DNA from: Leucoraja ocellata
Lineage: Eukaryota
Reading direction: 5' to 3'
Assembly: GCA_036785375.1 (NCBI GenBank)
Contig: JAWMAR010000392.1
Span: 1,116,001-1,180,000 of the forward strand
DNA: 64,000 nucleotides
Positions 31,092 through 64,000 of this stretch are shown piece after piece; the first letter of the stretch is position 1; each line of letters opens with the position of its first letter. Both the position numbers and the translations under genes were made by a program. The notes beneath the pieces are model-generated. The model was given only the letters and a program-made list of their open reading frames with translations. It had not been told where the DNA came from and did no database searches.

Positions 31092-31161
31092 ATGAGTAGA
31101 CCAATCCTTGTACAAATTACGGCCGTTTTCTTCCCTGTTCTCGTGGCGTTCGGGGTTCCAG
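31092..31161 (+). CDS. GPR139/GPR142-like class A GPCR copy 1, exon 1 (MSRPILVQITAVFFPVLVAFGVP+G)
   Basis: ATG at 31092, 70 nt open, ends CCAG|gtgagt (phase 1). Splices in frame to the acceptor at 32150 to give GVPANLLTV, matching the TM1 motif G-x-P-A-N-x-L-T of GPR139-family receptors. Confidence 0.88.
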
Positions 31162-31360
31162 GTGAGTTCTGTTATCGCTTGTCAATGTGACTTCGTCTTT
31201 TGAGATTTCACCCTCTTGTTCATTCGCGGTTTGTTTGTTTTCACAAGGTTTTTTAACTGTCTCAGTGACTATGAGTAGCTGAGCTGAGGCAAGAGGGGTC
31301 CCAATCATGGGTCAGAGTAAGAAAACGAGAACGGGAGGTTAAAAACCAACTGTAAGTGGT

Positions 31361-31783
31361 TTTATTCTTTGGAGCGCAGAAGGTTAAGGGGGGACTTGAT
31401 AGAGGTTTTTAAAATGACGAGAGGGATAGACAGAGTTGACGTGGAAAAGCTTTTCCCACTGAGAGTAGGGAAGATTCAAACAAGGGGACATGACATGAGA
31501 ATTAAGGGACTGAAGTTTAGGGGTAACATGAGGGGGAACTTCTTTACTCAGAGAGTGGTAGCTGTGTGGAATGAGCTTCCAGTGAAGGTGGTGGAGGCAG
31601 GTTCGTTTTTATCATTTAAAAATAAATTGGATAGTTATATGGATGGGAAGGGAATGGAGGGTTATGGTCTGAGCGCAGGTATATGGGACTAGGGGAGATT
31701 ATGTGTTCGGCACGGACTAGAAGGGTCGAGATGGCCTGCTTCCGTGCTGTAATTGTTATATGGTTATATGGTTATTATATGGT
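31361..31783 (+). mobile_element. CR1 family A 3' fragment in the GPCR intron (also about 51534-51956 and 63118-63541; absent in copy 2)
   Basis: ORFs 31369, 51542 and 63127; empty site at about 41218. Confidence 0.9.
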
Positions 31784-32149
31784 TGAGCTCGCTGGTCCCA
31801 CGCTCACTGGGTCTTGCTTTCTGATCAGTAAGGGAATGGGCTACATCGGGAAATGCGCCGCCCTCTCCCAGTCTCCCGCATTTTCCCTGACAGTCAATGG
31901 TAAACAAAATAGAGAACATTGAGCTGGATATTCTTATCGTGATATCCAAGTCCGTAGACTGACTACCCAACCACAGCGAGTGTATATCGACCTCTTTACA
32001 ATGTCTACAACACATGATTACTCAAACGCTTCACTCTACTGAATATTACACCAATTGTAGACCAACACTACAAAACACGTTCTTCCTCGCCTGTCCCAGC
32101 CCCTTGTTCTGATCACCATGTTTCCCACTTTTCCATTTCTTCCTTGCAG

Positions 32150-33069
32150 CAAATTTACTGACGGTCACTATTGTGTTCCGGGGAAGGTGCGGACTCTCCA
32201 AATGCATCAGCCGCTACCTGTTGTCCATGGCACTCGCCGACCTCATGGTCCTGGTCGTTAACGTCACTCTCGAATTCATTAAGCCCGTGTACTTCCCAGG
32301 GTCACTCCTGGACATTACTCCAGTCTGCAGCATCATCTTCTACCTGGGTGTGGTGGCCATTGACTGTTCTGTCTCGTTTACTGTCCTCTTCACCTTCGAT
32401 AGGTTTATCGCTATTTGTTTCCAGAATCTTAAAGTGAAATATTGTACCGAGAAAACCGCGACTGTGATCATAACATCAGTGTGTGTGATCAGCCTTGCAC
32501 TGAACGTTGGTTTTTGCTTCATATTTGAACCGGCAAAAGTAATTGACAATATACCAATGTTCTGTGTTAAAAAATCCACCTTCTACACATCGCCTCTCTG
32601 GGCGGCTTATTACTGGCTGCGGGTAGCATTGACCCCGTTGGTTCCGTTTGTGCTGATCGCGCTGCTCAACGCTCTGACCATCAGACACATCACCCGGGCC
32701 AGCAGAGTCAGGAGGGAACTCCGGGGCAGCGGGAAGGGCGAGAGTCACAGTGACCCCGAGATAGAGAACCGAAGGAAATCCATCGTTTTACTGCTCGCCA
32801 TCTCGGGCAGCTTCATCCTGCTGTGGGCCGTGAATGTGGTGCATAAAACCTGCATCAGTATCGCCGCTACTACTTCCTACCTGAGTCACATCACCGACAC
32901 CCTCACAGTCATTCGCTTAACGGGAAACATGTTGCAATCTTTGAGCTCTTGCACCAACACGGTGATTTATGCGCTGGCGCAGACCAAGTTCAGAGCTGAG
33001 ATGGTGAACCTGATTCAATTTCCCTTTGAGCTGATGCATACTCTAATTAAACTCTGTGTGAAGAAATAA
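32150..33069 (+). CDS. GPR139/GPR142-like class A GPCR copy 1, exon 2 (rest of TM1 through TM7 and helix 8); full protein 329 aa
   Basis: Polypyrimidine tract + ttgcag|CA acceptor. Motifs MALADL (TM2), FTFDRFIAIC (TM3), PLVPFVLIALLN (TM5), FILLWAV (TM6), CTNTVIY (TM7), TKFRAEM (H8). Stop TAA at 33067-33069. Confidence 0.93.
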
Positions 33070-61508: not shown

Positions 61509-62035
61509 GGGACGTATGTGTACAATGTAAATGCCTCGATTGCAATCATGTATATTATTTCCGCTGACCGGATAGCACGAAACAAAAGCTTTTCACTTTA
61601 CCTCAGTAGACGTGACAATAAACTAAATTGTAACTGTAATTTTCTTCACCCCTTGCTATGGGAACAAATATGCACATTCACCCTGCCCATGCCTGTCCTG
61701 ACTTTATTCACCTCTGCAGGATCACTCCCAGTCTTCTGCTGCTCAATCAATGCCTGATCGACCTCTCCCTAAAGTGACACGAATATTCCTGCACTGATCA
61801 AAATCATAATCATACATTATTAGCCAAGTATGTTTTGCAACATACGAGGAATTTGATTTGCCATACAATCATACGTACACTTTTTCTGTGGTGTAAAGAT
61901 TTATTCGAGGTGCTTGGAAATCCTTGACAGAGGAGGAATTCCGAATTAGTATCACAAAGGGTGGCCTTAGTAATCTGCTTTTTTTTTGTCTTCGTTACCC
62001 CCAGTTAATGTTGACTCCAAGATCAAAATAAACAA

Positions 62036-62118
62036 ATGATCAGCCATGATCATATTGAATGGCGGTGCAGGCTCGAAGGGCCGAATGGCCTACTCCTGCA
62101 CCTAATTTCTATGTTTCT
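62036..62118 (+). mobile_element. CR1 family B extreme 3' end, specific to unit 3
   Basis: Absent at the homologous sites near 38615 and 48935. Confidence 0.8.
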
Positions 62119-62853
62119 ATAAAGAAAATGAGAACACACCAAATATTTTTGTTTTCAGTTTTATGCCGAGCCAGTCTCGGCCCACCAGAGCAGAATCCAA
62201 CTTTTTCAGATCTTAACCAGAAACACCACCTATTCCTTTTCTCTAGAAATGCTGCCTGACCCGCCGCGTTACTCCAGCACTGTCTGTCTATCTCCGATGT
62301 GACCCGACATCTGCTGTGCCTTCACACACACCAGAATCGAACTATAATTTGCCAGTATTCAGCAAGCAACACGGCGTTGTGAAGTGGGTGAAGGTATACA
62401 AGTGGGAGAGGGAACGCGTGAGATTGCGTGACCCATAAAATACTAGTACATTAAACCCAGCCTGGAAAAACATGGACAAGAACAACAACAACAACCTGTA
62501 AGAACCGCTGTGTGTCTGATGAATGTAGGGGGAATGGTTACTGAAATCAACGCGTTATTTTGACATCCCCATTCGATTCCATGTGCGAAACAACACAGCA
62601 ACACAAAAGAGATGGAAAAAAGAGAACTCACAGTTTAAAGTTAGCGGAGAGTCTGAGAGAAGTTTAATTACATTAACCACAATTGCCTCATCTGTTTGTT
62701 TAAAGTTCCATAACTAATGTTAGTCATTCGACAAACTAATTGGATCACTGGAGATTTACCTCGGGTACAAATATAGGATTGGATTCACGTTGCTTGATCT
62801 GACTGTGGATCTGAGCACCGCCTCCAGCAGCATCGAGTCTCTGGGAGAGAGAG

Positions 62854-64000
62854 ATGAGTAGACCAATCCTTGTACAAATTACGTTTTCTTCCCTGTTCTC
62901 GTGGCGTTCGGGGTTCCAGGTGAGTTCTGTTATCGCTTGTCAATGTGTCTTCGTCTTTTGAGATTTCACCTTCTTGTTCATTCGCGGTTTATTTGTTTTC
63001 ACAAGGTTTTTTAACTGTCTCAGTGACTATGAGTAGCTGAGCTGAGGCGAGAGGGGTCCCCATCATGGGTCAGAGTAAGAAAACGAGAACGGGAGGTTAA
63101 AAAACAACTGTAAGTGGCTTTATTCTTTGGAGCGCAGAAGGTTAAGGGGGGACTTGATAGAGGTTTTTAAAATGATGAGAGGGATAGACAGAGTTGACGT
63201 GGAAAAGCTTTTCCCACTGAGAGTAGGGAAGATTCAAGCAAGGGGACATGACATGAGAATTAAGGGACTGAAGTTTAGGGGTAACATGAGGGGGAACTTC
63301 TTTACTCAGAGAGTGGTAGCTGTGTGGAATGAGCTTCCAGTGAAGGTGGTGGAGGCAGGTTCGTTTTTATCATTTAAAAATAAATTGGATAGTTATATGG
63401 ATGGGAAGGGAATGGAGGGTTATGGTCTGAGCGCAGGTATATGGGACTAGGGGAGATTATGTGTTCGGCACGGACTAGAAGGGCCGAGATGGCCTGCTTC
63501 CGTGCTGTAATTGTTATATGGTTATATGGTTATTATATGGTTGAGCTCGCTGGTCCCACGCTCACTGGGTCTTGCTTTCTGATCAGTAAGGGAATGGGCT
63601 ACAGCGGGAAATGCGCCGCCCGCTCCCAGTCTCCCGCATTTTCCATGACAGTCAATGGTAAACAATATAGAGAACATTGAGCTGGATATTCTTATCGTGA
63701 TATCCAAGTCCGTAGACTGACTACCCAACCACAGCGAGTGTATATCGACCTCTTTATAATGTCTACATCACACGATTACTCAAACGCTTCACTCTACTGA
63801 ATATTACACCAATTGTAGACCAACACTACAAAACACTTTCTTCCACGCCTGTCCCAGCCCCTTGTTCTGATCACCATGTTTCCCACTTTCCCATTTCTTC
63901 CTTGCAGCAAATTTACTGACGGTCGCTATTGTGTTCCGGGGAAGGTGCGGACTCTCCAAATGCATCAGCCGCTACCTGTTGTCCATGGCACTCGCCGACC
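62854..64000 (+). pseudogene. GPR139-like GPCR copy 4 (exon 1 62854-62919, exon 2 from 63908, truncated by the window end), frameshifted
   Basis: Exon 1 is 66 nt rather than 70 (ATTACGTTTTC vs ATTACGGCCGTTTTC). Splicing gives MSRPILVQITFSSLFSWRSGFQQIY-stop. Confidence 0.75.

Follow-up and report, generated by a model that had tools for sequence, protein, structure and literature searches.

The 64,000-nt window analysed here (positions 1,116,001 to 1,180,000, forward strand, of contig JAWMAR010000392.1 in the Leucoraja ocellata assembly GCA_036785375.1; coordinates below count from its first nucleotide) contains a tandem array of genes predicted to encode G-protein-coupled receptors (GPCRs) related to GPR139. 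Self-comparison by BLAST and inspection of the pairwise high-scoring segment pairs (HSPs) divide 30392-64000 into four head-to-tail units of 9.9-11.6 kb each, and the starts of the second exon are spaced 10,319, 9,854 and 11,585 nt apart along the array. A tblastn search of both strands of the window with the exon-2 protein returned four copies, all on the + strand, of which three match all 305 residues and the fourth covers 30 residues and is cut at the window end. A fifth copy was not found in 1-30000, the other tblastn rows being two short and weak matches (E 3.3 and 6.7). The four head-to-tail genes described in an earlier note, made from the letters of this DNA alone, were therefore recovered by both tblastn and self-comparison.

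Each unit holds one two-exon class-A GPCR gene, with an exon 1 of 70 nt and an exon 2 of 920 nt (Table 1). Exon 1 spans from the ATG to the donor CCAG/GTGAGT and encodes the initial Met, a short N-terminus and the first half of transmembrane helix 1 (TM1); exon 2 follows the acceptor ttccttgcag and runs from the TM1 Asn to the stop codon. The intron is in phase 1 and lies inside TM1, as 70 nt amount to 23 codons plus 1 nt and the split codon directly precedes the TM1 Asn, within helix 5-34 of the AlphaFold2 (AF2) model of a natural relative, the 329-aa Amblyraja radiata protein XP_032903442.1 (P0406). Genes 1, 2 and 3 are intact, with 329 codons each. Gene 4 has an intron of 988 nt, as in genes 1 and 3, but when spliced at the same sites as the other copies it loses its frame and meets a stop four codons into exon 2. 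The earlier note had given a 70-nt first exon (66 nt in copy 4), a phase-1 intron in TM1, a 920-nt second exon, a 329-aa product and one pseudogenised copy; coordinates and alignment agree with this model throughout, copy 4 being frameshifted by a 4-nt deletion in exon 1.

Exon 1 and exon 2 were used as separate search queries and were never joined, and the support for exon 1 is therefore comparative only. The exon-1 peptide, matched in 22 of 23 residues, runs on into exon-2 sequence in P0406, and its TM1 motif ..YYP(I/V)L..G(V/I)PAN.. recurs in the annotated relatives P0003 and P0025 (both Leucoraja), P0005 (Hypanus) and P0406. In a 92-row alignment, moreover, 90% or more of the rows have Y14 and N25 of exon 1. 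On these comparisons, exon 1 is a real exon. An alternative first exon at 31836-31899 (+), used in the automatic models of the relatives P0001 and P0002, was rejected, since it begins with ACG instead of a start codon in unit 3 and has no counterpart in unit 2. At the other end of the genes, the first AATAAA/ATTAAA past the stop codon lies at 33515, 43833 and 53693, approximately 445-450 nt downstream and inside or beside a copy of an interspersed repeat.

Table 1. Units, exons, introns and other features of the receptor array, in window coordinates.
Feature	Position	Strand	Description	Evidence
Repeat unit 1	30392..40359	+		Self-BLAST, pairwise HSPs
Gene 1 exon 1	31092..31161	+	70 nt	Peptide equals the N-terminus of P0406 in 22/23 residues
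Gene 1 intron	31162..32149	+	988 nt, phase 1; holds a ~420-bp interspersed repeat at 31353-31781	Alignment, self-BLAST
Gene 1 exon 2	32150..33069	+	920 nt	Pfam 7tm_1, E 4.1e-21
Near-identical tract	35050..40049	+	2/5000 nt mismatched against 45369-50368; flanking 3 kb ~2.3% different	Pairwise comparison
Repeat unit 2	40360..50678	+		Self-BLAST, pairwise HSPs
Gene 2 exon 1	40946..41015	+	70 nt; T10K and F14Y relative to gene 1	Alignment
Gene 2 intron	41016..42468	+	1453 nt; content unlike genes 1, 3 and 4 between 41218 and 42369	Self-BLAST, HSPs
Gene 2 exon 2	42469..43388	+	920 nt, intact	Pfam 7tm_1, E 2.4e-20
Repeat unit 3	50679..62128	+	Longer; ~3.2 kb of extra retroelement sequence within 56162-59789	Self-BLAST, HSPs; RVT_1 in the open reading frame 56128-58392
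Gene 3 exon 1	51265..51334	+	70 nt; peptide identical to gene 1	Alignment
Gene 3 intron	51335..52322	+	988 nt	Alignment
Gene 3 exon 2	52323..53242	+	920 nt, intact; 4 nt different from gene 1	Pfam 7tm_1, E 4.3e-21
Repeat unit 4	62129..64000	+	Cut by the window end	Self-BLAST, pairwise HSPs
Gene 4 exon 1	62854..62919	+	66 nt; 4 nt deleted (4 gaps in a 170-nt alignment)	Alignment
Gene 4 exon 2	63908..64000	+	First 93 nt only (window end)	Alignment, tblastn

The translated exon 2 of each of the three intact genes scores 73.6-76.1 bits with the Pfam model 7tm_1, for which the cut-off is 30.5, and no other Pfam model, including the olfactory 7tm_4, matched these three proteins at E ≤ 0.01. The fold was modelled on P0406, which shares 93-94% identity with the window genes, using a 92-row alignment. 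The AF2 model (pLDDT 88.9, pTM 0.86) has helices at residues 5-34, 41-71, 80-113, 124-147, 172-214, 226-262 and 274-300, a helix 8 at 302-328 and a beta-hairpin in extracellular loop 2 (ECL2), and by this model the protein is predicted to be a class-A (rhodopsin-type) GPCR with seven helices plus helix 8. The N-terminus before TM1 comprises approximately 4-10 residues and lacks an N-x-S/T sequon, so that the sequence and the P0406 model bear out the very short N-terminus (about 10 residues, no sequon) described in the earlier note. C83 in TM3 and C162 in ECL2 are conserved in at least 90% of the 92 rows. Across the family, conservation extends to the TM1 Asn and TM2 Asp, to a Cys in each of TM3 and ECL2, and to a TM6 Trp that lacks the Pro usually found after it; DRY is replaced by D-R-F, and NPxxY by C-T-N-T-x-I-Y. 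The window genes depart from the family at exon-2 codon 75 in TM3 (32374-32376, 42693-42695 and 52547-52549), where genes 1-3 have Ser and at least 90% of the family has the Trp of an S-V-W-x-T-V consensus. The Ser is also present in Leucoraja P0002 and Amblyraja P0405, and the Trp is kept in P0001, P0003 and P0406. When the P0406 model was compared with the PDB by Foldseek, the top matches were generic class-A peptide receptors and GPR139 ranked 48th with 21% identity; the fold therefore does not discriminate.

The exon-2 protein has 1824 homologues at E ≤ 1e-5 among 4358 candidates. Of the best 120 of these 1824, 117 are named, and all 117 come from a shark, skate or ray. The names are almost uniform: 112 of the 117 are 'probable' or 'putative G-protein coupled receptor 139', and the other five are tachykinin-like, FMRFamide receptor-like (two proteins), galanin receptor-like and uncharacterised. 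A search from a basal member of the family, catshark P0161, found 853 proteins at E ≤ 1e-10, and all 119 named proteins among its best 120 are from elasmobranchs. Neither search has a chimaera or bony-vertebrate protein among its best 120. Representatives at 50% identity were matched in 925 cases at E ≤ 0.001, 160 at E ≤ 1e-10 and 101 at E ≤ 1e-30, and all 10 sampled family representatives are elasmobranch. Within single species the family is large, as the best 120 rows include at least 38 distinct 90%-identity clusters in Heptranchias and at least 35 in Heterodontus (species tallied by hand). Many of these genes share scaffolds: among the same rows, at least 17 Heterodontus proteins lie on one 74.5-Mb record and at least 15 Heptranchias proteins on one 21.1-Mb record.

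On a 20-row IQ-TREE phylogeny, genes 1-3, P0001, two Amblyraja radiata proteins and two Leucoraja erinacea proteins form a skate-only clade (100/100), within which genes 1 and 3 pair (95/91). The successive sisters of this clade are stingray and manta proteins (98/98), sawfish proteins (100/99) and then shark proteins. The nesting of the skate clade among stingray, manta, sawfish and shark proteins implies that the subfamily is old and that the window copies are its youngest twigs. The placement of the window genes as a young skate-specific twig of an elasmobranch-wide receptor family is thus supported by these sequence comparisons. The earlier note had suggested birth-and-death evolution and one cluster of a large, lineage-specific family that is not GPR139 itself, a suggestion that the 1824 homologues, the elasmobranch top matches and the trees uphold.

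The copies have diverged little. In exon 2, genes 1 and 3 differ at 4 of 918 nt, genes 1 and 2 at 25 of 918 and genes 2 and 3 at 21 of 918; the corresponding synonymous divergences (dS) are 0.007, 0.049 and 0.042, and the ratios of nonsynonymous to synonymous divergence (dN/dS) are 0.53, 0.43 and 0.41 (NG86). The dS values of 0.007 and 0.049, together with the skate-only clade, confirm the recent duplication that had been claimed for the array. Of the 23 codons that changed between genes 1 and 2, 13 carry nonsynonymous differences, where neutrality would predict 76% (binomial p 0.047); this may be read as a weak sign of constraint.

The units are mosaics of more and less similar sequence. Units 1 and 2 differ by approximately 2.3% over 32050-35049, and the nearly identical tract that begins at 35050 (Table 1) fits the footprint of gene conversion or unequal crossover. 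Units 1 and 3 differ by approximately 0.4% over 32006-34505 and by 2-5% elsewhere, and units 2 and 4 are 88.8% alike upstream. This pattern as a whole would fit unequal crossing-over combined with gene conversion, and consensus polishing of the assembly could have added to it. The structural differences among units, namely the intron of unit 2, the ~3.2-kb insert of unit 3 and the deletion in unit 4, argue against a simple assembly duplication. Outside the genes, the unit sequence is mostly retroelement-derived, with RVT_1 reverse-transcriptase open reading frames (ORFs) at 36417-37202, 39110-40276 and 56128-58392, plus their copies. The array may have grown by unequal crossing-over between retroelement-rich units of ~10 kb, gene conversion would have homogenised the units patchily, and copies would be lost through frameshift, giving birth-and-death evolution. 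If so, the locus would be a clean example of array growth by unequal crossing-over with patchy gene conversion in a retroelement-rich genome.

The relationship to GPR139 was examined against solved receptor structures. A single-sequence search gave no match at E ≤ 1e-5; at E ≤ 1, the TRH receptor came first and GPR139 sixth (E 0.0024), behind the TRH, CCK-B and V2 receptors, a ranking that carries little information. With an 86-row family profile, human GPR139 became the best match (E 3.9e-19, 71.9 bits), followed by CCR5 (E 1.9e-12, 49.9 bits). In the profile alignment, the family and human GPR139 (PDB 7VUG) have in common a G-x-P-A-N in TM1, a D-R-aromatic in TM3, the TM6 Trp and a proline-less N-x-x-x-Y in TM7. 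They differ in that the family has the TM3 and ECL2 Cys residues and a longer ECL2, whereas GPR139 aligns with a 12-column gap and no Cys, and in the residue three past the TM6 Trp, which is Arg in human GPR139, Asn in the window genes and without consensus in the family. The TM6 Trp (W225) is invariant in the family alignment and is the only residue of the aromatic amino-acid pocket of GPR139 that can be aligned with confidence. In the available text of PMC12208981, GPR139 is described as highly conserved across vertebrates and as related to MIP/SPR, proctolin and FMRFamide receptors, whereas the present family has hundreds of members. A one-to-one orthologue of GPR139 or GPR142 was accordingly rejected as the identity of the window genes, on the basis of the single-sequence E of 0.0024, the structural identity of 21%, the 1824 homologues and the four copies in the window. 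By sequence, with human GPR139 as the receptor compared, the window genes are related to, but distinct from, GPR139 and GPR142. The nematode-type Srw model PF10324 had no match to the window proteins at E ≤ 0.01; it is precomputed on a few relatives (P0414, P0437), and atlas neighbours include FMRFamide-receptor-like and Srw-bearing clusters.

Outside the family, identity drops to 31% for a coelacanth protein, 29% for a salamander clade and 27-30% for teleost proteins. The nearest non-elasmobranch relative is an orphan clade of non-mammalian jawed vertebrates, also annotated 'probable GPR139' and represented by the coelacanth protein XP_005988539.1 (P0231; 31% identity, E 4e-27). Like the family, this clade has GPR139 as its best solved match (E 1.8e-18 for the coelacanth protein). 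However, the E-values of the coelacanth, salamander and anchovy relatives against GPR139 reach only 1e-13 to 1e-18, so that these are not GPR139 orthologues either. Unlike the family, the orphan clade has few matches (145 proteins at E ≤ 1e-5), and these range over catshark (66% identity to the coelacanth protein), sawshark, sturgeon, teleosts, amphibians, turtles and squamates. Given the orthologues in catshark and sawshark, sharks retain the orphan-clade gene in addition to the expanded family. The family and the outgroups lie on opposite sides of one branch, with a support of 93 in a FastTree analysis of 142 rows and an SH-aLRT of 88 in a quick IQ-TREE analysis of 50 rows. The conserved orphan clade may correspond to 'GPR210A/B', the name that a 2019 survey of Ensembl genomes gave to additional subtypes akin to GPR139/142 in coelacanth, gar and fishes (PMC6504862, in the text available). 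Two members of the orphan clade, P0290 (Stegostoma) and P0388 (Hyla), are annotated as isoforms of 'transmembrane protein 183A', which hints that the orphan-clade gene adjoins TMEM183A and was fused with it in automatic models, a possible synteny marker.

Variability along the protein was compared between the family and this orphan clade. The extracellular half was defined as the N-terminus, the upper halves of the helices and the ECLs, and the cytoplasmic half as the rest, with limits taken from the helices of the P0406 AF2 model. Mean column entropy in the family (87 rows) is 1.71 bits in the extracellular half against 0.89 bits in the cytoplasmic half (Mann-Whitney p 4e-15). In the control set of orphan-clade orthologues (93 rows), which has the same mean pairwise identity of 58%, the values are 1.33 and 1.17 bits (p 0.15). 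The contrast is greatest in the upper, pocket-lining halves of TM3 (1.64 against 0.76), TM6 (1.79 against 1.00) and TM7 (1.84 against 0.81) and in ECL3 (2.39 against 1.59). Between genes 1 and 2 there are 15 residue differences: 7 fall in the extracellular half, with a cluster of three in ECL3, and the other 8 in the cytoplasmic half or helix 8. The earlier note had pointed to substitutions in extracellular loops; an extracellular bias is clear across the family but is not visible among the copies within the window. The entropy contrast fits a ligand-diversified receptor repertoire and, as a pattern in aligned sequences, is the main support for that interpretation.

Taken together, we consider it fairly probable that the locus is the upstream end of a young tandem array, with three intact genes and one broken gene, belonging to a GPR139-related family that has expanded in sharks, skates and rays into a repertoire of differently tuned receptors. 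The cytoplasmic, G-protein-facing half is near-constant (DRF in TM3, N-T-x-I-Y in TM7, intracellular loop 1 and the bases of TM6 and TM7), and variation in the extracellular half and in the pocket-lining upper helices would allow members to bind different ligands. Differently tuned members would then feed one common signalling route, as in chemosensory repertoires. As a working guess from these patterns, the function is that of a chemosensory-type repertoire, and an immune or neuromodulatory function is less likely.

Among the sequencing runs, the best contain 0.53-0.58 of the sampled words, and no run recorded as RNA contains the sequence. Four runs were mapped on 30600-33600 at 90% likeness; depths of Logan contigs are not copy numbers, and the four runs gave no usable copy-number signal. 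Coverage by runs X2 and X5 extends over exons, intron and flanks alike, as with DNA, and a 456-nt contig of X2 over 30929-31384 has no listed difference or indel in exon 1. Run X1 (2015, 41 Mb), the tag of which, 'RNA?', is a guess, yielded two exon-2 contigs spanning 32226-32868 at approximately 95-97% identity, one of 457 nt with 22 differences and one with 187 nt aligned and 5 differences, and yielded nothing on the unique intron or flanks. These contigs, which do not reach the splice junction, are possibly a transcript of a close relative.

Several observations weigh against a functional, diversified repertoire. None of the four mapped runs has reads or contigs across the 31161/32150 junction, and all listed joints lie in interspersed repeats. 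X8, a poly-A RNA run from a related organism (~6% of the run read), has zero depth on both exons and covers repeats only. In the text of PMC11979771, the 50 genes most specific to a catshark 'brain & olfactory epithelium' library include no GPCR, which is mild evidence against strong olfactory expression, receptor genes being usually weakly represented in bulk tissue. The replacement of the TM3 Trp by Ser in the window genes could reflect relaxed constraint. The copies are so young that intact frames say little, and the dN/dS test is marginal. Excess variation on the ligand side also occurs in paralogue families with no sensory role, such as peptide or chemokine receptors. Finally, the FastTree and IQ-TREE trees are unrooted and contain no true GPR139, GPR142 or invertebrate FMRFamide/SPR receptors.

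Some of these observations would also be expected if the genes were decaying or never-functional segmental duplicates carried along by retroelement-rich DNA, with frames that are open only because they are young. A dS of 0.007-0.05, a dN/dS of 0.4 that is only marginally below 1, a fourth copy that is already broken, the loss of a near-invariant TM3 Trp and the lack of exon reads in X8, the sole clear RNA run, are all compatible with decay. Nevertheless, no exon, splice site or other motif conserved in the family has been lost from any of the three complete copies, and the subfamily is present in skates, stingrays, manta, sawfish and sharks. The Trp-to-Ser change is common to P0002 and P0405, indicating that it predates the window copies and has been tolerated, and we regard decay as a quite improbable explanation. 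It is extremely improbable that one or two real genes were multiplied in the assembly by haplotype or repeat misassembly. This would account for the 5-kb tract that is almost identical between units 1 and 2, and the relative P0001 sits on a record of only 218,546 bases. However, the units are 2-11% different in places and carry structural changes in units 2, 3 and 4, the sequence from 30 to 64 kb has no N run, and units 2 and 4 are so unlike (88.8%) that a simple two-haplotype duplication does not fit.

Other roles can be proposed for a genuine repertoire. The receptors might be borne by blood or lymphoid cells as an immune or leukocyte repertoire that senses peptides, chemoattractants or pathogen products, a possibility suggested by the position of CCR5 directly after GPR139 in the family profile search (E 1.9e-12) and by a V-set immunoglobulin exon 15 kb upstream of the array. 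Chemokine receptors score no better than many peptide receptors, however, and genomic neighbourhood is a weak guide to function: mammalian odorant receptor genes, for example, flank the T-cell receptor alpha locus. An immune repertoire therefore appears unlikely. It is also very doubtful that the genes encode neuromodulatory amino-acid or neuropeptide receptors of the brain that resemble GPR139 and were duplicated but have no sensory role. Among solved receptors, GPR139 lies closest to the family profile, and the available text of PMC6443882 and PMC12208981 describes it as brain-expressed and responsive to L-Trp and L-Phe. Set against this, GPR139 is highly conserved (PMC12208981, in the same text), whereas the present family has hundreds of fast-turnover members with a variable pocket, and the GPR139 Arg three past the TM6 Trp is Asn in the window genes and has no family consensus.

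A differently tuned repertoire of chemosensory type resembles the vertebrate chemosensory GPCRs (odorant receptor (OR), TAAR/TARL, V1R/ORA and V2R/OlfC) in its tandem arrays, rapid birth and death, pseudogenes, and combination of a variable ligand side with a constant signalling side. It differs from them in that the family is not a member of any of these groups by sequence, matching 7tm_1 only and not 7tm_4 at E ≤ 0.01, and in that its coding region is split by the TM1 intron. In the available text of PMC6368271, the catshark repertoire comprises 8 OR, 5 TAAR, 6 ORA, 35 V2R, 5 V2RL, 6 TAS1R and no T2R genes, so that the very small canonical OR repertoires that the earlier note ascribed to cartilaginous fishes hold for this species. 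Cartilaginous fishes have acute chemical senses yet few canonical odorant receptors, and V2Rs have so far been their sole expanded family. One may speculate, tentatively and with the odds against it, that in the present family sharks, skates and rays have the large class-A chemoreceptor repertoire so far missing in them. The family would then derive from a GPR139-related orphan receptor, one or a few of its genes would be expressed in each olfactory or other chemosensory cell, and it would sense amino acids, peptides or other water-borne cues. If this were true, it would compensate for the very low numbers of OR, TAAR and ORA genes in cartilaginous fishes.

No description of the family was found in the literature searched, and the term 'GPR139-like' was likewise not found there. 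The text of PMC11979771, PMC10115646 and PMC10620051 does not mention the family, although the supplements of these papers may list it. As far as could be found, the family is known from automatic NCBI annotation only, under the name 'probable G-protein coupled receptor 139', and is otherwise undescribed. It would represent a second expanded GPCR family with a variable ligand side, hidden behind a misleading automatic name, and elasmobranch 'probable GPR139' annotations should not be taken as GPR139 orthologues. With dozens of genes per species among the best 120 of the 1824 matches alone, its members are candidate sensory, and possibly immune, receptors.

Other features of the window were noted in passing. 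An interspersed repeat of ~420-480 bp is present in many copies that are 88-98% alike (e.g. 31353-31781, 35083-35559 and 39888-40362), with one copy in the introns of genes 1, 3 and 4 and others at the unit junctions. It has very high depth in all four mapped runs; contig depths are 10^5-10^6 in those that are DNA-like, and the poly-A RNA reads of X8 cover it too. Retroelement ORFs at 56128-58392, 58848-59642 and 29425-30195, with or without an adjacent RVT_1, match the Pfam model ALKBH8_N (E 1e-12 to 1e-13); this is probably a retroelement-derived segment caught by the Pfam model and not an alkB-type gene. Runs of N occur at 18730-18862 (133 nt), 24009-24415 (407 nt) and 25170-25792 (623 nt), all upstream of the array, and the low GC content of 0.22 in 24001-26000 is due to the N runs there. 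The immunoglobulin V-set ORF lies at 15102-15593 on the + strand, ~15 kb upstream of gene 1, and its match is weak (E 8.2e-6, 26.4 bits against a cut-off of 26).

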